Assembly: GCA_977017575.1 (NCBI GenBank)
Contig: CDRNVI010000030.1
Location: forward strand, 62,001 to 126,000
Direction: 5' to 3'
DNA length: 64,000 nt
Source of the DNA: Paramoeba atlantica
Lineage: Eukaryota > Protista > Discosea
A model generated the notes under the pieces. The model was not told the DNA's origin. It saw nothing but the letters and a program-made list of their open reading frames with translations, and did not search any database. How positions within the stretch are numbered: position 1 is the first letter of the stretch; the number at the start of each line of letters is the position of its first letter. Position numbers and translations under genes: made by a program. Below, piece after piece: positions 1-62,328 of the stretch.

Positions 1-543
1 CGGAAGTTGTGTCAAATCTACCTCCCCTTCAAATTTATTGTCCCCTACGCACAGTTTTCGCATACTGGTGGGGAGGTGTCGCAGATCAAGCTCCCCGCTG
101 AGCTCGTTTGTGAACAAGTAAAGAAGGACGAGATTCGGAGGCATCATGTCCAGCGGGAGGGTTCCATTCAGACGAGCACTGTTGGCTTTCATTTTCTCCA
201 AACTCTTTGGGAGGCATTCCCACTGCATTGATCCAAAAAGGCTGCGATGACCCCAGTCAATCTGGATGATGGTTTGCTCTTTGCACATCACGCCAGGCCA
301 CTCACAGGCGGGAGTGGATGTGTTCCACGCTGCATGCGGATGCTGAAGTCCGGCGATCAGTCGCATAAGTTCATATTCCTGCGGTAAATTTGCACCTCGC
401 ACTTTACCGGGGCGGGCAACTGGACCATCCGCGGCATGTATTTCAGCGCTGAGACGAGAGTCGTGATCATTTCGTTTTCGGCGCTTCGGGGAGGGTTGCG
501 GTGCGTCAGCCAAATCAACGCGGGATACAGCTGAGGGGAACAT
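1..543 (-). CDS. Stand-alone LRR protein (23-aa repeat family), 3' end runs off the window; absent from the ORF track
   Basis: Manual translation from ATG at 543: MFPSAVSRVDLADAPQPSPKRRKR...RPGKVRGANLPQEYELMRLIAGLQHPHAAWNTSTPACEWPGVMC...LYLFTNELSGELDLRHLPTSMRKLCVGDNKFEGEVDLTQLP. Same N-cap and repeats as the other copies. Upstream ctaacAG acceptor-like site. Confidence 0.9.
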   Translation of the reverse strand, partial: MFPSAVSRVDLADAPQPSPKRRKRNDHDSRLSAEIHAADGPVARPGKVRGANLPQEYELMRLIAGLQHPHAAWNTSTPACEWPGVMCKEQTIIQIDWGHRSLFGSMQWECLPKSLEKMKANSARLNGTLPLDMMPPNLVLLYLFTNELSGELDLRHLPTSMRKLCVGDNKFEGEVDLTQLP

Positions 544-625
544 CGTAGGGCTGTTAGATGAAGAAGCTCTAGTGACTAGGTATGGAAAAAAATTTAACCG
601 GAGAAAAAAGTAATGCAAACGCATA

Positions 626-790
626 CAGTGGTTTCAGTTGATCACGTACAGTGGTTTCAGTTGATCTTGCCCCCCCCCCTCGGAATTTTGGTTTTTTTAT
701 CCGTTTTTGCTAATCTTTGCAGCATTGGAGAGATCTCGTCTTCCTAGCGAAGAGCTTTGCCGCCTTTTCTTCATAGAGAACCGCTGGTGC
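626..790 (+). mobile_element. Left long terminal inverted repeat of a Tc1-like (DD32E) family; terminal ~20 bp tandemly duplicated
   Basis: TA|CAGTGGTTTCAGTTGATC at 626 and 649. 649-790 is the inverted counterpart (roughly 80% by eye) of 15063-15205. Confidence 0.7.
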
Positions 791-1317
791 CCCCTGGATC
801 AAATAAACACTGTTTTTTGGACGTTTTCTGTGTACACAACCACTTTTTGCCTCATTTTTCCGATTTTCTGTATATTTTGCACGTGTAAATACGAGTAATA
901 GTGTTTTTTTTTTCTTTTTTTTTCTTTTTTTAGTGTTCTAAATTGATAATTTGAAAGCTATGTCTAGTACCCCCTCTATTGCCTAATTTAATATAGTCAA
1001 CACCTCTACATTATGAAGACCAGACCCTCTAAAGTCAAACAAGGGGAGTACGTAGAAGGATGGAATGACAAAAGAGAAGACAACCCCCCAATATCCCACA
1101 AAGGAACCGTGGCATTACCTCTTTGGATGTACTGCAGAAGTGTATGGTTTTGTCTGCCACCATCTGCCACCGTCTGCCACTATTTTGCAAAATTTATGCC
1201 TTTGTTCATGGATTTAAATCAGTTGTTTTACAACTTTCCTCAATCATACTTCAATCAATATATATATTTCTTAAAGAAGTACTATTTAAGAAGTCTTTAA
1301 ACGCATTTTTTAGCACG

Positions 1318-2193
1318 ATGCCCGAGCCTGCCACTAAGGAAATGTGCCCGAGATGTAAGGTTTTGCGCAACGTCTCACTTGTTGCACCAAAGCGTTGTCT
1401 TGTTTGTGCGTGTCGCATAGACGGCAGCGACACAGAACCTTGCGTATCCTGTAAGCAAGTAGTTGTGCCTCTTGGTGCACAGTACTGCCCACTGTGCTTG
1501 ACTCCACAAGAAGTTGAAGGACTTCCAACCTCTGTAGTGGATCAAATTAGGTGCGAAGGCATGGACGACGAGAGGGTCATGCGTACTTATATTGCCTATG
1601 TTGGAGTTACTTTCAACGGTGTCACGCTTAAGTTCGGGCATATTGGGAACATGCTCGTTTTAATTAAAAAGCGATTTAATGTTTCGAAGGAAAAGGCGTA
1701 CGTCCGTGCTGCATAATCTGTTGGACAGTACTTAGATCGTGCGATCAGCAAGCCGCAGATGCGCGAGGCAAAAAATTTTCTTGCCAACATGTGGGCGTCT
1801 TACAAGGCAGATGCATCAGCGGGAAAAAAAAGGATGCGTGAACGTGTTGTAGTGGCTCTAAAGGAATTACTACGCGCTTCAGCCCGGTCAAAGGAGATGC
1901 GTATCTGCTACTCATCTCTTCATTTTGTCCAAGAGGAAGATTTGCTAAGCATCGGCAATGCAGCGACCCGTGAAACACAGAACCACCAGCTTGAAATGCT
2001 CAAAAGCATGGGCGTAATAAAGGAGAAAGACTTTGGAAGTCGTCTACTTCATGTCACACGCCCTCCGCGACAAAATCCACGCCAAGAAATAGATTTAGAC
2101 GAAGATTCGGAAGTGTCCCCCAGAACAAAACGCATCCGTAAGACAATTGTAGCTACTTCGTCGCCTTCTAATGTATTAAAGTTTAATGCGTAA
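1318..2193 (+). pseudogene. Partner ORF of a Harbinger-like element: N-terminal four-CxxC double zinc ribbon plus an unnamed YxR...WxSY...LGVIK domain
   Basis: ORFs 1123-1716 and 1759-2193 are in the same frame, separated by one TAA (1714-1716) that aligns with Ser in the paralog at 37526. CPRC/CLVC/CVSC/CPLC motifs. tttttAG directly before the ATG at 1318. Confidence 0.7.
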
Positions 2194-2404
2194 GTGTTAA
2201 AGACGGTAAGGAGTTAAGAAAGATAAAGTTTTTTCCGCAAATGTTAAAGACGCTAAGGAGTTAGGGAAGTTTCAAGGTTAAAAGTTGCGCATTAGAGACT
2301 ACGTAACAGTATTTTCGTGTAACGTTTTGGTGGACTGATTTTGATGTCATTTTTAAGAATTTCTAAAAAAAATTAATTTAAATTAATTTCAAAGACATTT
2401 TTTA

Positions 2405-3468
2405 ATGCCCGCTGACGCATCAAATACATTAAGCAGAAGATCGGAACTCTCTCGATGCGGTTTGAGTCTTCACTCTTACGAATTTCTATCGCAATTTTAT
2501 GAAGAAGACGTAGTATTCGCTAGCTTCTATTTTCTTCGAACGGGGGAGAGTTATTTCACCATATCAAAATATCTTGCAATGAAATTTGGGAGGGGGTGGG
2601 GAGAGCGAACTTGTGCTAACAAAATCCCACAATTCTTTTCCCGCATGTACCACGATATGAAGAACACGTGGCTAGATTTGGATGATGACATATTATTTCA
2701 TGAAGACAATAACGCCACCCCATTTTGGAATAAGGATGTCAAGGTGCTATTCGACACAGTGCCATTATACGTGGACAACCTACCACACTGCTATCAACCC
2801 TAATACTCAACGCACGTAGCTAAAGCGTTTGTTGCATGCATATTGAGTGGATACCTATGTTTCGTTGGCGACTCGCTGTATTGTGGGGCGTCGTCGGATT
2901 CTGTCATACAAGACGCTTGCGGTGTGATGAATTTCCTGGAGAGAAAAGGCTTGCCTGCTCTTGCAGACGGAGGGTTCTACAACGGAGCCACAACAAGGGT
3001 TATACTTCCATTTTCCAAATCGCAGATATGGCCACAATTTTCACGAAGTCGTTTGAGCAATAGAGAGTATATGACAGAAGCGCACGACAAGTTAAAAATA
3101 AACGAAAGCCTTTCTTTTTTTCGTGCTCGTATAGAACACGTATTTGGGCGCGTCAATGTCGGTCGTTTTCTGGCGTTTAAGCAGTGGACTCGAAACTCGG
3201 AAATGTTCACGCTTTCTGCTGCGCTCTCACTGTACACAACATTGATAATTTTCATCGTCACGGAGCAAAGGGTAGATATCAAGCATTAACATGTAACAAA
3301 ATCCGGGAAATCGAAGACATCATTGAAAAACATGAAAATCAGAGTTCTCGATATCCAGCTCCCGAGCAGCTTAGTAAAACGGGGCCAATGGACGCTAACG
3401 TATTTCATACTCAGAGCGACTCTCGTGACTATTTTAACGCAGTCGATGAGATTGATTTGAGTTCATAA
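2405..3468 (+). pseudogene. PIF/Harbinger-ISL2EU-like (DDE_Tnp_4-type) transposase
   Basis: 2405-2803 and 2843-3289 are in frame across one TAA. Motifs FDTVPL, YSTHVAK, YCGASSD, LADGGF, RARIEHVFG. After a frameshift near 3205, CCALTVHN matches the Harbinger C-terminal AC..LHN motif. Confidence 0.8.
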
Positions 3469-3736
3469 TTAGATCTTTAACTTGGTAACACTTTTTTTTG
3501 CTTTATTCCTCTCGTTTATCAAAGAGCTCATCTAACGACGTAGTGCTACGTTTTGGATTTTTTAGAAGCTCGATATTACAGGGTCGATCGTGTTTTTTGA
3601 GCGACTGGTCAGGGGGGGGGGTGATGTGAACTTTCGAAAAGGTAATGTTGGCAAGCGGCTTATCTATGCTAGACGGAAAAAATAAATGTAATGTACCAAG
3701 TGGTCTTTTTGTCTGCCACCGTCTGCCACTATCTGT

Positions 3737-4632
3737 TTGCATTACATCCTTTGTGAGAGAAAAGAAATAATAAATAAGGGATTAAGCATACGTAAATTAT
3801 CAAATAATTTTGGACGTGACCGTCGTACCATTAGAAGAATTGTTAACCTGTGGAAAGAAGGCAAAGATCTTACACCCCAAGAATCCCCAGGAAAAAATCA
3901 AGGCGTTTTAAGGACCTTGTAAAAAAATTGTGGATGATGAAAACGAAACGTACGATGGTTGCTTAACTTATACTTGGATACACGAGCAAGTGCTGAATAT
4001 GGGGTATAAATGTTCGTTAAACAAAATAAGAACTATTTTGAAAAATATTGATTACGGTAGATGGGCTAAGTCACCGAACTGTGACCTAACTGAGGTACAA
4101 GTCGCAGCGTTTGAGATTAGCAAACGAATTGCTTACATGGCAAGGAGGCAATGGCTTGGATGGGTATTAGTGTAGAACACGGGTTTTTTCCTGAACGTGT
4201 TTGAACCCAATGACAATACAACTTATGAAAGCGCGCACAAGGTCACTGGGGGAGTGATCCTTGACTCCTTTCAGAAGCCTAATGGGTTTTTACATTATCT
4301 CAAAGATCACGTTGATGATGTGACTGTGCAAACATAATGCTACCACCCATAACTTGGCAAAAGGCGAATTGATAAAATATCGTATTAAACAATTGTCTTG
4401 GCCATCGAATTCGCCTGATTTAAATCCAATAGAAAATGTTTGGAAACAAATGAACGGTATCATAAAGAAAAAAAATCAGCCCCACAATCATGCTACCCTC
4501 GCCGATGCCATTAAAAAAGCTTCTCGGATTCGAAAAAGTCCCGAAGAGAAACGTAAAGTGTGCAACAAAAATTCAGTCCCAAATAGACTTCGAAAAGTGT
4601 TGCAAAATAATGGAGGCCATTCCGGATGCTAG
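3737..4632 (+). pseudogene. Degenerate Tc1/IS630-like transposase (DD32E family)
   Basis: N-terminal HTH fragment (SIRKLSNNFGRDRRTIRRIV) and WPSNSPDLNPIENVW. Homologous to 14463-14939. Several stops and frameshifts. Confidence 0.85.
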
Positions 4633-4929
4633 TTCTTTGCCATCAGAGTTAACTTTTGGACACAAATTCGGTTTTTTGCTCCATTTTTCGTGAGTCCGGA
4701 GGGTGTGTTTCGCTGCGATTGTGAGAACGAACATTCCTCTTTCCGTGGCCATTCGTTTGTTTCCTCATTCGAAGAGGTTCGTCCTGATCCCGTAAGTGTA
4801 GTCATGCGAAGGGAAATCCCGAAAACTGTGAGGCCATTGGAAAATGACATCGTTGAAATATCTCATGTGTTGTGGGAGAAAATATTAGATTCGATTGACG
4901 AATATGATCGACGAATCTTTGGCGTTTGA

Positions 4930-5469
4930 ACGACCCAGATGGGGGTACGGATCAAGCACTAGGCGAATGCACCACGGTTGTGGTATTGTCCGTTGGCGCT
5001 TTAGAGTGGATCCCCCCATGTATCACCCTAGACGAGGCTCGTTTAATGGTACAGAAATTGGCGTGCTTATCGTCAATGATGGACGTCGACATTTAGGCGC
5101 TGTACAATTGGCCAAATGGGCAAACCCTCTATAAATGGAAAAAAACGTCTCGTACGAAACTTTGGACTGCTGGAAACGCAGCCAAAATACATTACACTCG
5201 AAAAGAGCACCTGTCGATTCGTATATTGTGGCATATAAATTTCCCAGAAACAAGGAAAACTATCGTGGCGTGCCGATCCCGCAGTGGTTGATCAGTGGCT
5301 GTGCAACACGCACATGACACCGGACAACACGCCGCGTAATTTATTCAAGGTCATAGGATTTTTACGCCATGTGGCGGCTATCATTGGAATGCAGGCAAAT
5401 TCTTGGGAAGAGTATCGAAAATTCAACGTCACTTTGGGGAAATACGCGATCGGGACGAGAAATCGATAA
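4930..5469 (+). pseudogene. Reverse transcriptase relic of the YR-retrotransposon family
   Basis: KYITLEKSTCRFVYCGI*ISQKQGKLSWRADP and TPRNLFKVIGFLRHVAAIIG align with KYMTMEKNTCQFTYCGIRIIQKEGHISWMADP and TPRILFQFCGYVRHVSAILG in 52601-53527. Confidence 0.75.
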
Positions 5470-6665
5470 ACCCAACAGATATGACACACGTCATAAAAAT
5501 ACTTCACGCGGTATTATTAAGTAACAGAGTGTTTTGCCCTCTTACAAGCCCTAAAATGGGGTGAACAGTTAGGGTATAAAGTTTTTCTTCTTTTTGTGCT
5601 TGGCACAGATTCTACGGTTGCAGGTAGAGCGTTTTCTAAAGGATATTCGAAAATTTAGTATTATAGATAACATAACTATAGATAACGTAACGGTAATGTG
5701 CAATTGGAAAGGTGATCCGCATTTAAACGGTAATCCGACCCCCGGGTTGCTGAGCAACGTTGAGTGAATTGTGGTCAGTCAATAGGTGCCCATCCAGCCA
5801 ATTTTCGTTAACTTCACGTTAGATTCGTGTGATTCCGTAGACCCCCTCAAATACGATGTATGAGATCTGGCGAACTAGTCTTTGTCTCGTAACATTTTAG
5901 TGAAGTAAAAGATGGCAATTGCAAATTTGTGGTGTCTTTCTCTTCTCGTTCTACTGTTTTATCACCAACGTCAACCATGTGTTTTGATTCTTTAAATTAC
6001 ACTTCGTCAGCCAACGTACTTTCCTCTCCCGAGGACGCGTACATGCTGTTTTTCTCCATGAAACAACCGGTACGCATTTCCGGCTCCTCACTTATTTATG
6101 GAGCGAGTTGCAGCGCGCACGCTTGCACATTTGACATAAGCAATTTTGATTTTACTAACTTGACAAAGCAGCGCAGAGCCGTGGGCTCAAGTACAGAAGA
6201 CTATCGACATCAGCAGATGTTGAAAGCTCTGCGTGATTTAGTGAATTAGTGTCAATCTGAATACGAAGATTTGTTAAAAGGTGCACAGTACGCTCACTAA
6301 CAAGTTCCGCGCAATTCGTGCATGTTGGTTAGTACAAATAATGGGGGATCTCTTACTCGGGGGTGTAAGGGAGTAGGAAAATCGTTGTGACATTTCTCGT
6401 GATCTTTGAAATCGCATGCAAAATCACTTTGGACGTCAGAGTACACTTCTACAGCGGTAACACCTGAGTTATCACTTAAGTTCTTTATGACCGCAGCCTT
6501 CAAGGTGCCCCTTAGATGCTACTAATGTACATTTAGAAATTCTATCTTAACAAATTTCGAAGTAATTTTTAATCATTTGCCAATAGTGGGTCTAAATGTA
6601 AGACCAAATCTTTAAAAGAATATCTGCGGAATTGGTTGTAGTGGAATCGGAAAAATCATAAGTTC

Positions 6666-35040: not shown

Positions 35041-36407
35041 CAAAATTAGAAAACTATTTTGGTCGAGTAAATTGGATTACTTTTGTTTATTATAAAGGAG
35101 ATTTCAGTAAAACAGTATCTGCTCAAATCTCAAAAACTCAAAATGGTTTTTCTAAAACATAGAACTCTGCGAGAGCTCTCGAATGCGCTATCATTTTCCA
35201 AAAATTGGAAGGGTTTTGCAATTTTTAGATCCCCCGCAGCATCTGATTTACCCCCCATACAGGGGACCTCCCGAAGGGAAGTCAACACGTTTCAATTTGA
35301 CCCTCCGTCCCTTGGGTTATCGGCGATTTACACGAGGGGAGGGGGGCGTCGAACGTCCCGTTGTGGTGGAGCGTGTGTGCGTCGCCCGATCACTCCCTGT
35401 ATGTGATACTTCATCGTTTTTCAGAATTTCGAAAAAAGAAATCGGAAAAAGTTGACATATTTTCAAGGGGGGAGGGCTAGAGGTGTGATACAAGCCTGTC
35501 ACTAGAAAGTAGGAGGAAAGATCTCAGGGGCTGCGGGTCATGGACCGTGCTGGGACCGCGATTCGACTTCGAGGGACCGCAAAGTACTCGTTTTTTGATT
35601 TGGTGTGGAGTACAATTCGAATCAAAAAGGATTTGTATTTCGTGTACCGGTACAATGGTATGTAATACACATTGTAAATTGTATGTAATACTCATATTCT
35701 AGGCCTTAATGTAACAAGGCCGTTTATGTTTAAGCTTAATGTACATGTACTCAATGTACACGTAGTTAATGTACATTGTACATGTAAGACGGTTTTTGCA
35801 TATCTCTGGTTTGTTGTTTTGCATTCCGTTTCTTTTAATCTTGACAATGAGAGGAACTGAAAGCAATGATGATCTGAAATCCAGAATTGCGAACCCCTCG
35901 GAAGTTGAAAGTGAAAAGGCAATTGTGGGGCTGCGGATGCGGCCCAAAACGAGTTCAAGTGATCAAGCGAGATCACGCGAGATCTCTCGGGAGCGGATTT
36001 GGCTCGGGAGTGTAGTTGGACAATGTTAAAACGCAACCACGTGCCATTGATTGCGCCATTCTTGGGTAGCCTTCCGCGACAGAGTTTAGGAACTTTAACA
36101 TCTCGGGGCCAGGGATGCCGTAGGTGGTACCAAGGAGGGGGAAAAGTCTACAGTACTATGGAACATAATACGTAGTACATAATAATATGTAATGCTAGAA
36201 GTTGGTAGCGTAAGTGACTTTCCAAGGAGAACAAAAAAGGGGAAAAAATCCAATTTACCCAGTGGGTCCCACTACATGAACTTTCTTCAGCCTCACTTTT
36301 GTGCATATTAAAGGGCATATTAAAGGGGGGGATACAGGGGGTGCATATTAAAGTGGGGGTCAAAGTATACAAGTAGAATGGCAGACTGTGATTCTAAACG
36401 TGGCGCT

Positions 36408-37316
36408 TTATGGGCTCGCGTGACGAATGGCAGTGTCCTGTATGGTAATGGAATCTTTCAATTGACCTGGAAGAACAGATTCATCAAGCACGCCACAAAG
36501 ATCGTGATTTCGGTCTATTCGAAGCGTTCGCAAAGATTTCGGAAGACTTCCAAAAGTAACGCATCCAGCCATATTATTCGAACGGATATCTAGATATTCT
36601 AATAAAGGAGGCAAGTGTTCCAAGTCAAGCGTTCCTGTAAATTTGTTCTCGAAGACATCTAGAGCTTGCATGCTTTGTGGCAAGTGACCTAAGTCAAGTG
36701 CGCCAATAAAATTATTCGTCCTTAAATCGAGCACCTGCATTTTTTCCGGCAAATGTGCCAAGTCAACAGGATCTGAAAAATTATTGTCACTAAGAAGTAA
36801 CATCATGAGTCCTGCTGGCAAACGCGTTAGATCCACACCCCCTTCGAACTGATTCCTATTCACACGAAGACTCTCCAAGGTGTCAGGCAATCGCGTCAAG
36901 GACAACTCCCCGATAAATTTATTCTGCGATAGATCCAGAAAGGAAAGTCGAGGTGGTAAACGATCCAGACTCACCGTTCCGGTAAGCAAGTTCGAGTTCA
37001 CATCACAGCTACGTAGCGTGGGAGGGAGCCACTGCCAATGTAGTGTACCAGTCAGGCCCCATGAAGAAGACTTGGAGGGGCCCATCCAAATCCACTGGAT
37101 CGATGTCACCTGCTGATGTTCATCGCAGAACACCCCTACCCAGGTGCATACGGAGATTGGAGATTGCACGCGCTTGAAGAAGGAACCCTTTTTTTTCGTA
37201 ATACGCCAGGACTTATGCTTTTCGGTGAGATTGGAGACAAAATGCTGCAGCATTTCTTCTTGAGGGAGCAACAGCGTGGTGACTTTACCCAGACGAACGT
37301 CCGAGCCATCATCCAT
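36408..37316 (-). CDS. Stand-alone LRR protein (302 aa, DDG-GKVT subfamily)
   Basis: DDGSDVRLGKVTTLLLPQEEML N-cap, CTWVGVFC, about 8 23-aa LRRs. Confidence 0.92.
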   Translation of the reverse strand: MDDGSDVRLGKVTTLLLPQEEMLQHFVSNLTEKHKSWRITKKKGSFFKRVQSPISVCTWVGVFCDEHQQVTSIQWIWMGPSKSSSWGLTGTLHWQWLPPTLRSCDVNSNLLTGTVSLDRLPPRLSFLDLSQNKFIGELSLTRLPDTLESLRVNRNQFEGGVDLTRLPAGLMMLLLSDNNFSDPVDLAHLPEKMQVLDLRTNNFIGALDLGHLPQSMQALDVFENKFTGTLDLEHLPPLLEYLDIRSNNMAGCVTFGSLPKSLRTLRIDRNHDLCGVLDESVLPGQLKDSITIQDTAIRHASP

Positions 37317-37525
37317 TGTAAATATGCAGGTGAACCCGTGGGTCCTAAAACTACTTGTATACTTTGGGATTAGAGTTAAAAGCAGTTCTAAGGACTCCTA
37401 CACGTATAAGGATTATCCCGTCCCACTATTTAGTGTTTAGTAGAATAGGGCAAAATGAAACTCTAAGTAGGGGAGAGGAAAGATCAATGAAAAATACGTG
37501 ATGCATACACTAGTGTCCCCCCCTC

Positions 37526-38032
37526 GTGGTTGAATCGTACCACAGTTTTCGAGATGATTACTCACAGAGTAAAACAACGGGCCCCAGCAAAGTTTACTTA
37601 CGATCCGCCTCAGCCGTCGCTAAGTATTTGGGACACCCTCTGCGTGACTTCGACAAGATGCACTTGTCGAACACTCTTCGACGAATATGGGCCTCATACA
37701 CCGGCTCTTCGCCAGAAAAGAGAAAGCAAGACAGAGAAAACCTGATGGCCCATGTGCATCAGTGCCTGGGACCTTTGAGTGCTGGTGTGAAAATCCATCA
37801 ACAGTATATCCATCGCTGCGCTGAAATTGCGGAACCAGAGGACATACCCCCTGATGAGTATTTAAGTCGTCTAAAGGAGTTGGGGGTTATAAAAAGGGAT
37901 GGAGATGTTCGGCTGACGCACGTGAGCCGTCCTGAACGGGAAGAAAAGTCGAAACGAGAAAAGATGGGTTGTGCTTCCATGGAAGTTCGCTCTGTCATTC
38001 AAGTATACTCCCCTTGTCAGAATAAAATATAA
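37526..38032 (+). CDS. Second member of the Harbinger partner-ORF family (5' truncated or short form)
   Basis: KVYLRSASAVAKYL...IWASY and LKELGVIKRDGDVRLTHVSRP align with 1318-2193, with identical Y-to-W spacing. Confidence 0.6.
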   Translation: MVESYHSFRDDYSQSKTTGPSKVYLRSASAVAKYLGHPLRDFDKMHLSNTLRRIWASYTGSSPEKRKQDRENLMAHVHQCLGPLSAGVKIHQQYIHRCAEIAEPEDIPPDEYLSRLKELGVIKRDGDVRLTHVSRPEREEKSKREKMGCASMEVRSVIQVYSPCQNKI

Positions 38033-38106: not shown

Positions 38107-38508
38107 ATGCCGTCTGGTAGGCCGTTGTTTGCGAAACGAAAGAGTTCAATGACTCATTATGTTTCACAGGGTGGAAGGCCTTCCGATCGTGAGATTGAGC
38201 GGCGCGAGGAAGGGTGGAAAGAATTTGTGAGTAATGGCGGCGAATCTCACATAATGGCTCTTTCGAACATTGTAAGCGAATACATAGAAGAAGCGTCGAA
38301 CTTGTTCTTCGAAGCCCAGAACTTTTTTTTCATGTCTTTGGAGGAAAAATTCCGTTCTGTGGCATGTGATGAAGAGTTCTTGAGTTGGATCCAGCTCCAA
38401 CCAAGACTTTTTTCTGTTCTATTTTCCGTCAGCGATGGAGTTCCGGTATTCAAGATTCCGAGCGAGCGAAAACTCATCTTCTCTCTGACGGACAATTGCA
38501 TTCATTGA
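38107..38508 (+). pseudogene. Possible N-terminal part of a divergent Harbinger-like transposase, truncated next to the IS30 relic
   Basis: GES...FF...SDGVPVF parallels GES...FF...FDTVPLY of 2405-2803. Follows the partner ORF on the same strand. Confidence 0.4.
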
Positions 38509-38586
38509 GATGACAAGTATAAATTGGTGGAGGACGGATCGACCGCCCCGGAAAAAGACAACCAATGCAACGTAGATGCTGGTTCG

Positions 38587-39323
38587 CGTTTCATTCACCC
38601 GCTCATGTTTCGAAAATTCTGTACCGTTGTCATACGTAATGGTACAAACTATATACTTCTTTAAGCCCTTTATAATTTGATTTGCAATTTCTTCCGCATG
38701 CTTTGATCGTAGCACACGTAGCACAACGAACCGACTCTTTCTCTCACACAAAGTCAGAATGCACCCTTCCAGGGTGAGTTTTTTCCTTCCACTAGGTCCG
38801 CTTCCCAATCCCCATCCCGACGCCTCTTGTTAACTATCTGAGGGCGAAGTCGGATGGGGACTCTGTTTGGAATCGTTGGGCGACCTCAATTGAAGCGACG
38901 CCTATAAGCACGCTTGCCACGAATCCGAAGGGATTTGTAGAGCTTCCCGCTGTCGTCTTTGTCGCGTGCCACATGGCGATAAATAGTGGTCACGGACGGT
39001 GAAGCCTGTGAGCCAACAACTAAGGTGTTGGACACCTGTTCGGGGCTGTAAAGTTGTCCTAAGCGCTTCTTAATGTGGCGCTCCACAGGCCCACGGATAA
39101 GCCGGGGACGCACAGCCTTGCTTACCAGGCGACGCTTTGACACTCTGTGTGCGCGGTTGGCTTCGTAGCGCCGACCCCGTTTCTTGTTACGGGCCAGCTC
39201 ACGGCTAACGGTGCTATGGAATTTTCCGATGGCCGTGCCAATCTCACGCCGTGTCGCGCCTGCCTCGAACATCTTTTAAATGGTGACTCTGTCCCTTTGC
39301 CCGAGCCTCTGATATTTTGACAT
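38587..39323 (-). pseudogene. IS30-family transposase relic
   Basis: MSKYQRLGQRDRVTI*KMFEAGATRREIGTAIGKFHSTVSRELARN (HTH_38-like), YSPEQVS, TIYRHV, IPNRVPIRLRPQIVNKRRRDGDWEAD, LTLCERKSRF, TITYDNGTEF. Two stops, one frameshift, C-terminus missing. Confidence 0.9.
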
Positions 39324-54499: not shown

Positions 54500-55973
54500 T
54501 ATTCTGAATCGTAATCTCAAAGAGCACTAATTTCAAAAATATAGATTAAAGGAAGATTTTTTTTGAAAATAATTTACCCAGTGCAATCTGTGCTACCCAT
54601 AGAATCTTCTAAAAAGGTGGACTTGCAGAAGGTCCAATGGCGGTGTAGTCCTCCGAATCCTGGTCCGACAGTGCCATTGGGATCTTGCGCCAGGTGGCCA
54701 AACGTCGCTCAGCAGCACCCCAGGGAACCTTCTCTCGCTCCGAAGCTTCCCTTCGGCTTCTGATCGAAATGAATGTCACTTTGATGAGGGCCCAGGCGCG
54801 CATGCTGGTCAATCGCTTGCCCGCTGAAGATTCGTATCCGCCATTACGCACGCCATGGCGAGGAAAGTAGGGAAAGTTCGAAGCAGAAAGTTGTATAAGT
54901 TAAAAAAATTCTGAACAAAAAAACCATGTGCACCTGGTGGTTAGGGCAAAAAGTCTATCTGGAAATAAATCACTGTCCAGTGCACGCCGGACATTGTGCG
55001 CGCTCGTGGCCACCCTCACGGAGCAAGCTTCTGATCCGCCGAGCACCATGCTAAGCAGCGCATGTCGAAAGATATCCAAAAAATATTTCGCTCCGTCATC
55101 AGAATACCCGAAGCGCCGCGGTGCTCTGAATTACTGCACCAGTGCCTGACCCAAACTGGGTTTAGAGGCGGGAAGCAATATGTACGAAATGCCGTCGGTA
55201 CCCTCCCAGACTCGGTGTACTACGCAAAGCCTTGGGCTGCGTCCCATTTTTGGCGGGTCATACTCGAGCTTTAGCCAGCACAGCAAAAAAAAAGAGAAAC
55301 ACCCAATCCGTTTCTGCCCTGCTGCAAGCCGCACACCCTAAAAGGAACGACCTTTAAGAAAAAGTGACAAAAATTATAAATGCCCGATTTACTTTTGACT
55401 TGGGTATTATTTCTCAATATTTCAGTTGTATATTCATGTTAAGAGCCTATCCACTATCTATCTGAAAGATGGCAGTGTCAGGGAAGACCGCGAGGAGCTC
55501 CCCACCTTACTTCCCCACATTGAGTGTACCAGGCTTCAGTGAAGCGCGTTTTGCAGGAACGGTATCTTTATCTCAGAAAGATGGCTCCTTTTTTTGACAA
55601 AGCCAGTACGTTGCGTCTTCAGGATTTCTGACTAACCACCATTCCATAAGAATATCGCTGTCCGAAAGTAGCGAAAATAAGTCTATAATAATTCTCAAGA
55701 ACAATAAAATAAATAATAATAAAATAAATAATAATTAATGATATTTTATTATTAGAGGTACAAATTATTATTAATTTTGCTACCATGACTCTTTATGAGT
55801 TCCCCCCATTCTGGTACTTATGAGTTCCTTTTTCTAAGTGAATGGTTTGGTACCCACTTTTCACGAAGCGATTTTTTTGGCACTTCACTTAAACGAATTT
55901 TCATAAATTTATAAACTACTCTATGTCAACCTGCTCTAGTGAGCGGAATCGCTCACTAGGTGGGTAAAATTCT

Positions 55974-56462
55974 TTGCGCCAGTTCCTCGCCTTAAAGAGG
56001 TTGCCTTGCCCTTGCGCAATTCATCGTCTCCGACTGTTCCCAATGAAACGTCCGATTCTCCTCAACTTGGAGACGATGGGGTATATCTTCGTATTGCTCG
56101 TCTTCTGGGCTCCAACTATTTTAAGCGATCCATCCGCTCAGATGAGCTGCATCCGTTGTCTAAAATTTTTCGGAACATTGTGGACTTCTTATGCCTCGGA
56201 AGTATCATCTGTTCGACGCAACGAGCGCAAGGAACGCGCCGACGAACTCCTAGAAAAGATCAAAGGCATTGAAACAAATGTAAAAATCAAAACTTCATGC
56301 ATTCATAAGGCAAACGATGTAGATGTAGAAACCTTAAGTTCGCAAGAAGTTTTTGATGTTCTTATGGATCTACATGTAGCTACGGTCCCGGAAAAACATG
56401 TGCTCAACATTCGGCGCTCCGCAGAATCAGACAAACTCATAAAGAAACGCCGAACAGAGTAA
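55974..56462 (+). pseudogene. Third member of the Harbinger partner-ORF family (frameshifted)
   Basis: GVYLRIARLLGSNYF (frame of 56006) joins LKFFGTLWTSY (frame of 55974). Confidence 0.55.
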
Positions 56463-56599: not shown

Positions 56600-56821
56600 A
56601 TGGAAAGCGAGCTTATGGATTGCGGCCTGTCATTGGTTACATTACATTTCCTTGTCCACAACATGGGCTTCGATCGCGATTCAGTCATCGCCGCTTTTTC
56701 ATGCTTGTATGATGGCGCAAGGTGGTCGTCCATCGCTTCTAAAATGAAGGTTGGGGATTACGATCCTGCAAAGAAAAGATATCCCCCCCTAGTGAGGGGG
56801 GTGACGGTAGACGATCTTTAA
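56600..56821 (+). pseudogene. Truncated N-terminus of Harbinger-like transposase
   Basis: ELMDCGLSLVTLHFL...DSVIAAFSCLYDG aligns with ELSRCGLSLHSYEFL...DVVFASFYFLRTG at 2405. Confidence 0.6.
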
Positions 56822-58660
56822 ATTGAATGAAGGGAACGATGAAGGGGATGATGGAGGGGATAACGAGCTCCGACTCGTGCTTCTCAATTTTGACCGTAGA
56901 ACTTCACGCAAAACCATTAGCCTCAAAGCAGAACAGAAAAACGATTGAAGTTGCGCTTCTAATTTCATCCATTTTTCACTTTGTTTAGAAAGGCGACAGA
57001 TACCTAGGGGGGGTGGTCGACGAAAAAAAATCTTCGAAGGACCGAAAAGCGACAGATAACTAGGGGTGGGGGTGGGGGGGGAGAGATAACTGGGGGGGTA
57101 CAGTAGTTATTTGGCGATGCATGTATCGTCATCACCTACGTGCAGTATGCACGTATAAAAAGACGAATTCACGCCATTTTTATCTCAATCTCCTTCACAT
57201 GTCGAACGACTCTGTGTTGAACGCACTCAGCCTAATTGAACATGGAAGCGCTCCTGCAACCCCCTCGGATCAAAGTAAAAAGCCATTGCAGGAGATTGGC
57301 GCTCTGAAAAACATGAATGTTACACTGCGCCCCATGATTTCATGATTTTCGAATCCCCTAGCATTCCAGATGGAGCAATTGTCACGCTGCGGGACGAACT
57401 CGCCAGTCTTTCACTACTTCCCGCTACCAAATGCGACCAGAAATTGTTATAATAATATTATACAATTTCTTAACTATTCATTGGTCAGATAAGTTATAAA
57501 GTATAACCCATATTAAATATAGATTACAATATTAAATAGGAAGATACTACTCCCTCGCTACCGTAGGTTAATTCGTCGTGCCCGATTTCGTGTCCGATTG
57601 TTGGCCCGATTTCGTGCCCAATACCGTTTCAGGTGAGTTTTCGAAAAAAATGATTACAAAGACGTATGAATCGAATTGAGTGACAAGACCACTAGTTTTT
57701 CAACAATTCCGATGGGTCCCACCTGCCCCCCATCCCCACCAGGGTGATCATAGCAATTTCTGAAATTTCGAAAAACAAAAAATTGAAAATTTATGAATGA
57801 ATGTCAATAAATACATTTTTCCCAAATCAACTCCTAGACCTTTTTTTGAGAGTTTGGGGCCTGATATACCTGTATACGCTTTGGTTTCATTCGATATTTC
57901 TTCACCCTTTGCCGGTAATAGACCTACAAAGTCCAAAATTTACCTAGAAGTGTGTGACACGCAAGGCCGTAGAGGAAGGAGGAGGCGCAAGGGAAAAAGG
58001 CAGAAGGCGGAGCCTTTTGCCGCGGCGACGACGACTTCCTCGCGTGGGAAGCTGTAAGGGTCCTAGGGAGCATGTTCCGATGGCTATGTAACCCAGGCTA
58101 AAGCTCGGTTGCGAAGCCCGCCTGGGCCTCTTGTCATACAGAATGCCTGTGTGATTTACTATATAATCCAGGCTAAAGTGGACGAGGGAGATACTAAAGG
58201 CATCTTTGTAAAATCACCTCAATACTGGAACGGTATTTCTCAGTTTGTGGAGCATTCTGATGTGACAAAAGGATCTTTAACGGGTGATACCGTTCCGATT
58301 TCGTGGTGGTTTTCCAAAGGTGCCTTTGGTATCTCCCTCGTCCACTTTAGCCTGGGTTATATAGTAAATCACACAGGCATTCTGTATGACAAGAGGCCCA
58401 GGCGGGCTTCGCAACCGAGCTCGTGCTATACGAGAAGGCTTCACGTTCTACCGCACCTGTAACCCTCGTACTCTTCTCGCACAAGCACTAACAAGAGAAA
58501 CGGTCAAGAAGCGCGAAGAATACTATACAACGACTGGAACTAAAGAGCTCCTGGATATTCACGGTGTTGGAAATTTCGGAACTCCAAGGACGGACTGTTC
58601 AAAAGCAACGCTAATAAGGTGGGGTACCGGGGCAACGCTACGATAGGGGGATATAGTACG

Positions 58661-61984: not shown

Positions 61985-62328
61985 TTCGATAGAAAGTGTA
62001 GCAACGCTTCTACAAAGTATAAGAAACTACAGAAAATAACATGCTGGTCGTATAGACATACCCCTGCCGGGTCGATGGGTAATTACCCATTAGCGGGTCT
62101 GTGCGGGTAAATTACCCGGGTCTGTGACCCAGTTACCCGCACCGACCGGGTCATAAAATATTAAAGGCGCAAAGAACACACCCTGGAGTAAGTGGCTTGT
62201 AAGTTACAATAGCATCTTTGCTTTTGCGTCTGTGTGTTGTATTTCAAAGTCTCTGCATATTCCACCGCATAATTCCTTCCAACACGGTAATTGCATGTGA
62301 TACAATTTACGCAGACTAGGTCGTGTAA

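Follow-up and report, generated by a model that had tools for sequence, protein, structure and literature searches.

Transposons of the PIF/Harbinger (PHIS) type have been split into six groups according to their target-site duplications (Han et al. 2015, PMC4482050). The group known as Pangu, which is the Harbinger2 of Repbase (Kojima 2025, PMC12730594), is described as having ANT duplications, terminal inverted repeats (TIRs) starting with GG or AG, and two open reading frames (ORFs), the second of which is mostly motif-less (PMC4482050); among the 34 families in Table S3 of that study the second ORFs are 230–290 aa long and mostly have no domain, with Myb_DNA-bind_4 being present in two only. 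PHISTA is another PHIS lineage with an extra protein that lacks Myb/SANT (Kojima 2025, PMC12730594), and ISL2EU elements have a 2-bp AT duplication, a YqaJ partner, and a transposase with THAP and HTH_Tnp_4 (PMC4482050 Table S2). Both this element type and the occurrence of an unrecognised helper in such elements are already published. Here we describe a two-gene element at 1125–3749 of a 64-kb stretch of DNA, referred to as the window (positions 62001–126000 of contig C30 in a 45.7-Mb assembly; coordinates are those of the window unless a contig or locus is named), together with its relatives elsewhere in the assembly. The window is eukaryotic, repeat-rich and fragmentary, with ~44% GC. A first-pass annotation had proposed a two-gene element of the Harbinger superfamily at this site, and our analysis supports that proposal. 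We read the window copies as relics of autonomous two-gene cut-and-paste PIF/Harbinger (PHIS) transposons, Pangu/Harbinger2-like in type and resident in a kinetoplastid-like protist, in which the first gene, ORF1, would encode an accessory factor; we assign this reading a probability of roughly 0.6.

The element at 1125–3749, referred to as copy 1, is complete yet broken, and its span is wider than the 1318–3468 originally assigned to it. Its ends were located using those of two intact families, A and B, as a guide. We have high confidence in the anatomy of the element, and the parts of copy 1 are as follows.

1122–1124, plus strand: 5' target-site duplication TTT, identical to the triplet beside the 3' TIR, in the context C-TTT-G
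1125–1136, plus strand: 5' TIR, GGATGTACTGCA, with 11/12 bases complementary to 3738–3749
1156–1183, plus strand: three subterminal repeats GCCACYRT at the 5' end, with 10-bp spacing
1318–2193, plus strand: ORF1, the putative helper gene, with four CxxC pairs ahead of a helical core and a basic tail, and an in-frame TAA at 1714–1716
2177–2269, plus strand: two tandem 46-nt GTAAG-rich repeats, which start in the region of the ORF1 stop and extend into the ORF1–transposase spacer
2405–3468, plus strand: DDE_Tnp_4 transposase, with a TAA at 2801–2803, a frameshift near 3205–3220, and the D, D and E codons at 2753, 2966 and 3134
3715–3732, plus strand: two subterminal repeats GCCACYRT at the 3' end, oriented as in the 5' set
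3738–3749, plus strand: 3' TIR, TGCATTACATCC, 12 nt, pairing with the 5' TIR at 11/12
3750–3752, plus strand: 3' target-site duplication TTT

ORF1 of copy 1 is a single reading frame broken by that one stop, and its translation confirms the four N-terminal CxxC pairs noted earlier. The transposase is present in three pieces (2438–2800, 2804–3220 and 3205–3462) that correspond to positions 4–344 of the transposase profile; the middle piece gives a Pfam DDE_Tnp_4 match of 22.8 bits, and the codons of the D/D/E triad are all intact. The only five plus-strand occurrences of GCCACYRT in the 64-kb window are the three 5' and two 3' repeats of copy 1 listed above. The same ends are found joined in a 76-bp miniature inverted-repeat transposable element (MITE) which consists of nothing other than the two ends of the copy-1 family (L026:6710-6785, corresponding to G000:C30:134709-134784); it is flanked by an AAT duplication and is 97–98% identical to the copy 1 ends.

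The broken window copies were left unrepaired, and intact paralogues recovered by searching the assembly were used as references for the family. Full-length copies, TIRs and target duplications could be defined for families A and B as well as for copy 1, and the intact relatives are 2.6–2.7 kb long with TIRs beginning in GG and 3-bp duplications. Family A (L021:2376-5088 between duplications, 2.7 kb) is represented by six copies sharing 98–99.7% identity and sharp common boundaries. Its TIRs are GGACCC...GGGTCC, its duplications are AGT, AGT, AGA, AAT, AAT and AAT, every one in the context C-NNN-G. Its two genes, each with a pyrimidine-rich tract ahead of it, specify an intact ORF1 of 298 aa and a transposase of 393 aa. 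Family B is 2.6 kb long, its 7-bp TIRs are perfectly matched (GGTGAGT/ACTCACC), and its duplications are ATT and AAT; the TIR of the copy-1 family starts GGATGTA. All ten insertions scored in families A and B, copy 1 and the MITE have 3-bp duplications, and eight of these are ANT (AGT twice, AAT five times, and ATT). Family A has its own subterminal repeat, CCACTAYGGG, with two occurrences in the first 70 bp and three in the last 80 bp, as against 0.58 expected in the whole locus. The transposases of intact paralogues match Pfam DDE_Tnp_4 (PF13359) at 38.3 and 40.1 bits against a cut-off of 24.8 bits, and the D, D and E residues are invariant or conserved in seven members of the family. No DNA-binding domain was recognised in the transposase by Pfam, including THAP and HTH_Tnp_4, and a word-indexed protein search returned near-self matches only.

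The association of ORF1 with the transposase was examined across the whole assembly using profiles built from 23 ORF1 and 7 transposase sequences, with loci merged and counted by hand. The ORF1 profile matches 131 pieces, representing about 85 loci, and the transposase profile matches 87 pieces. At 20 of the 24 near-full-length ORF1 loci the same strand carries a transposase of this clade no more than 2.5 kb downstream, and ORF1 is found just upstream at about 32 of the 36 transposase loci that retain the N-terminus; on a rough estimate, ~0.2 loci with such pairs would be expected by chance in 45.7 Mb. The first-pass annotation would have been refuted by a partner gene not linked to the transposase throughout the genome, and the counts do not refute it in this way. 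Other DDE_Tnp_4 clades in the genome (123 Pfam matches) are not accompanied by this ORF1. Divergence of the two genes among families is correlated when measured from family A (Spearman rho 0.86, p 0.007), with a value of 0.60, which is not significant, when measured from family B. ORF1 is the faster-evolving of the two, with 22–36% identity among families versus 42–51% for the transposase.

The ORF1 proteins are 260–300 aa long and have three parts: the N-terminus has four CxxC pairs, the core of ~180 aa is helical, and the C-terminal tail is basic. Their open frames are intact across the diverged families. No Pfam family scores above its cut-off in 22 members, although DZR and DZR_2 matches recur below it (best 20 bits versus 27). 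The CxxC pairs are regularly spaced in most full-length members, and AlphaFold2 models the putative zinc-ribbon region with short strands at a predicted local distance difference test score (pLDDT) of 66–89. Sequence searches of the PDB with a single ORF1 sequence and with a profile gave Cys-rich noise only. A word-indexed search of 5.8 billion proteins found one near-identical protein only, a metagenome scan with one ORF1 protein found nothing, and the ESM Atlas yielded no usable match. An exhaustive profile search of 1.84 billion representative proteins recovered 53 at E ≤1e-3, and the 18 of these that we inspected are largely full-length, most of them having four CxxC pairs, a PQD-like linker, a helical middle, the motif LRNxWxxYxG and a basic end. 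Twenty clusters of relatives were looked up, and all derive from ENA, Logan or MGnify assemblies without an organism or an informative name. In our view the ORF1 proteins form a genuine and conserved family, recognisable only in its putative zinc ribbon.

AlphaFold2 predicts the whole of ORF1 at pLDDT 78, and the core (residues 62–245, 25 sequences) at pLDDT 92.7 with a predicted template modelling score (pTM) of 0.73, as two helical lobes and two short strands. Foldseek searches of the PDB with the whole-protein and core models returned nothing at E ≤1e-3. It had been proposed at the outset that the partner is neither a Myb/SANT protein nor a YqaJ nuclease, and none of the tests made here contradicts this; no Myb, SANT or MADF domain was seen in ORF1 by Pfam, PDB sequence or fold searches, and no YqaJ signature by Pfam. 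YqaJ occurs at two loci only in the genome, unlinked to these elements. These data bear on the possibility that ORF1 is a very divergent descendant of a Myb/SANT/trihelix helper, to which a zinc ribbon has been added and which has passed beyond the reach of sequence methods. ORF1 has the same position and presumed role as such a helper, and two published Pangu families do carry Myb_DNA-bind_4 helpers (PMC4482050). However, no Pfam Myb family appears at E values up to 10 in 12 members or up to 0.1 in 10 further external members, the PDB profile search returned only the Cys-rich matches noted above, and no Myb/SANT structure is among the top 50 matches of the confident core model in either of two fold searches. 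The genome also has zero Myb_DNA-bind_3 or Myb_DNA-bind_4 matches, though control genomes are equally silent. We consider this line of descent improbable.

How such an element might move can be outlined from its parts and from better-characterised relatives. In the canonical PIF/Harbinger elements that have been tested, the second protein is required for transposition. By analogy with the helpers of Harbinger3_DR and PIF/Pong, ORF1, which occupies the place of a Myb/SANT-type helper, may be an obligatory accessory factor. The DDE_Tnp_4 transposase is encoded by the downstream gene, and the element duplicates 3 bp as it inserts, mostly ANT within C-ANT-G. The targets of ORF1 would be the transposase and/or the direct repeats in the subterminal regions (GCCACYRT for copy 1 and CCACTAYGGG for family A), and ORF1 would deliver the transposase to the nucleus and to the element ends. 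We put the odds at about even that ORF1 is an accessory factor acting on the subterminal repeats, the transposase, or both. The two genes point the same way and each follows a pyrimidine-rich tract, an arrangement that would be in keeping with polycistronic transcription and trans-splicing. A more ambitious version is tentative, and we regard it as doubtful: that ORF1, with a double zinc ribbon and a helical core of two lobes that has no counterpart in the PDB, is a structurally new module for sequence-specific DNA binding and targeting which took the place of the Myb-type helper within one PHIS lineage, reads subterminal GCCACYRT-type repeats and helps to set the C-ANT-G preference, and that it may be the unrecognised second ORF of Pangu/Harbinger2 elsewhere.

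ORF1 could also be something other than a DNA-binding recruiter: a regulator or adaptor, for instance one that chaperones nuclear import or tunes transposition as an inhibitor, or else a selfish passenger that persists through linkage. Zinc ribbons frequently serve for protein contacts, the basic tail has KRxR-like motifs, ORF1 evolves faster than the transposase, and ORF1-only derivatives are present in the genome, all of which would suit such a role. Yet ORF1 remains intact across families that have diverged to about 25% identity and lies upstream of nearly all transposase loci that retain the N-terminus, which argues for a needed function, and the subterminal repeats imply a sequence-specific binder at elements whose transposase has no Pfam DNA-binding domain. 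We think this role rather unlikely, and retain ORF1 as a candidate accessory factor of a Pangu/Harbinger2-like element.

Several points weigh against that assignment. The fit to the Pangu/Harbinger2 group of PHIS is one of duplication, TIRs and gene content, and membership of the transposase in the Pangu clade is putative. ANT is a preference and not a rule, with copy 1 flanked by TTT and one family A copy by AGA. The subterminal repeats are direct, and not inverted, between the two ends, and the putative binding of ORF1 to DNA or to the transposase is inferred from position and analogy. Several intact ORF1 genes, for example at C99:228403, C10:213106 and C21:576675, have no nearby transposase in the profile-match lists, and there is a tandem array of ORF1 fragments at 765–781 kb of C21; ORF1 therefore exists also apart from the transposase. 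The array (C21:765015-781295 and C110:25695-26273) has about nine tandem units with a period of ~1,995 bp, in each of which ORF1 is represented by its N-terminal 190 residues, interrupted by one TAA, and a transposase is absent. The unlinked copies raise the further possibility that ORF1 is, or has become, a host gene family, with the unlinked intact copies being functional and the transposon-borne ones captures. The unlinked genes encode 257–329 aa and lie on C99, C10/C58, C21 and C53/C89, again without a transposase in the profile-match lists. Against this, the great majority of full-length copies are inside TIR-bounded elements just upstream of a transposase, and ORF1 and transposase diverge together; we regard a host gene family as most unlikely.

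The window has two other ORF1 copies, which together with a stub of transposase are located as follows.

37514–38032, plus strand: copy 2, a 5'-truncated ORF1 covering profile positions 115–249 in an open frame, with no transposase downstream; twin at C56:82250
55968–56459, plus strand: copy 3, a decayed ORF1 remnant, with profile positions 151–241 at 56154–56429 and the YLR motif in ORF 56006–56272; twin at C56:75848
56600–56752, plus strand: N-terminal stub of the copy 3 transposase, 49 aa at 56606–56752, with E values of 8e-7, 6e-4 and 1.5e-5 in three comparisons

The three window ORFs belong, by sequence comparison, to one protein family, as had been suggested from their shared motifs. BLASTP matches the C-terminal half of copy 1 to copy 2 at E 2e-8, copy 2 to copy 3 at E 4e-4, and copy 1 to copy 3 at E 3e-3, and a profile of intact ORF1 paralogues finds all three in a search of the window (copy 1 at E 6.5e-41 and 1.2e-25, copy 2 at 1.2e-38, and copy 3 at 1.6e-9). 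The motifs themselves are present in copy 1 and in the ORFs at 37526–38032 and 55974–56462. Copies 1 and 2 have the same Y-to-W spacing, whereas the YLR and WTSY motifs of copy 3 lie in different frames, indicating a frameshift. The first-pass annotation described three independent copies, each followed by a transposase or its N-terminus. This holds for copy 1, with its three transposase pieces, and for copy 3, with its 49-aa stub, but copy 2 retains no more than the C-terminal 55% of ORF1 and has no transposase; the ORF at 38107–38508, once taken weakly to be one, matches neither the transposase profile nor any Pfam family and was rejected. All three window copies are dead relics.

The three copies and their surroundings (1–5995, 36026–37957 and 56154–56429) have twins of 95–98% identity in the same order on contig C56, at about 124.5, 82.3 and 75.8 kb, and the copy-1 transposase ORF is intact there (342 aa). 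Other loci are also paired between contigs (C10/C58, C26/C59, C11/C24 and C67/C100). The C56 twins point to a segmental duplication of ~60 kb or a second haplotype, and are not additional transposition events.

A number of other features were observed in and around these elements. Directly 3' of copy 1 is a decayed element of the Tc1/mariner type (3737–4632, plus strand), in which helix-turn-helix pieces and a 31-bit DDE_3 fragment are spread over several frames. Two direct repeats, at 1148 and 3707, were considered as Tc1 TIRs and rejected, being the subterminal repeats of the Harbinger element itself. GTAAG-rich repeats, tandem or scattered, occur in the ORF1–transposase spacer of two diverged families (2177–2269 in the window, and L021:3530-3630 in family A). 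An IS30-like ORF pair (HTH_38, 31.8 bits) lies at 38419–39272 on the minus strand, shortly past copy 2, and may have displaced the remainder of that element. Leucine-rich-repeat genes flank these elements or are split by them (36408–37316 of the window, minus strand, and L025:4776-5528), and such genes appear to be a common landing ground. A repeat at 57538–58364 with an internal palindrome (58159–58364) has copies of 80–90% identity beside several truncated Harbinger copies (L012, L032, L033, L038, L039 and L046).

The host looks kinetoplastid-like, as judged from an 18-mer resembling the kinetoplastid-type spliced leader (SL) that is found at ten loci on ten contigs (12 matches in all), compared with zero for a control pattern. 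The spliced-leader-like sequence ends in AGTTTCTGTACTTTGTTG, and one copy, at L048:1484-1518, has a poly(A) run before it and an ORF directly after it. Rfam gave no match to this sequence, which looks more like a repeat that was retroposed or bears an SL than like an array of SL RNA genes. Merlin is the sole report of kinetoplastid DNA transposons found in the papers searched (PMC8101967), and according to a 2025 survey of 57 trypanosomatid genomes no more than four clades of transposable elements, every one of them retrotransposons, had been recognised in that group (PMC12278014). Neither the zinc-ribbon ORF1 family nor Harbinger-type elements in kinetoplastids were found described in the literature searched. 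The ORF1 partner family, with its putative double zinc ribbon and a helical core without a fold match, and its host group appear to be undescribed. A recently active two-gene family of Harbinger type would widen the known picture of kinetoplastid DNA transposons. PHIS helper proteins decide end recognition and nuclear delivery, and a helper whose confidently predicted fold has no match gives structural and biochemical studies something concrete to aim at. ORF1 may also account for the second ORFs with "no known motif" in the Pangu group.

Among described systems, ISL2EU resembles the element in having a related DDE transposase and two ORFs, and the first-pass annotation had labelled the element accordingly. 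That label falls, since the duplication is 3 bp and not 2 bp, and the AT duplication, YqaJ partner and THAP/HTH_Tnp_4 of ISL2EU are all missing here. Spy has no target duplication and a single ORF, in contrast to the 3-bp duplication and two ORFs of the present element, so that ISL2EU and Spy are both excluded by duplication length and gene content. PHISTA of Puccinia (PMC12730594) is alike in being a PHIS lineage with an extra protein devoid of Myb/SANT, but differs in its TA duplications, TET/JBP dioxygenase cargo and fungal host.

Canonical PIF/Harbinger elements (Harbinger3_DR, PIF/Pong) share with ours a two-gene cut-and-paste organisation, a DDE_Tnp_4 transposase, 3-bp duplications and subterminal repeats. 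Their helper is of the Myb/SANT/MADF/trihelix kind and their duplications are TWA or CWG, whereas here most duplications are ANT and the helper combines a putative double zinc ribbon with a helical core that has no fold match. Of the features that define PHIS or PIF/Harbinger elements, a DDE_Tnp_4 domain with its D-D-E triad and TIRs with a 3-bp duplication are present, and a Myb/SANT second ORF was not found. The closest system is Pangu/Harbinger2, although the TIRs are 6–12 bp here and 11–40 bp there, and the kinetoplastid-like protist host lies outside the 15 species listed for that group. The first-pass annotation had inferred a distinct lineage, an idea which the comparison does not support since ANT duplications, GG-starting TIRs and a motif-less second ORF of 230–290 aa already define Pangu/Harbinger2 (PMC4482050). 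All of these are found in our element, which is also alike in its DDE_Tnp_4-type transposase, its two ORFs and its length of 2.5–3.5 kb.

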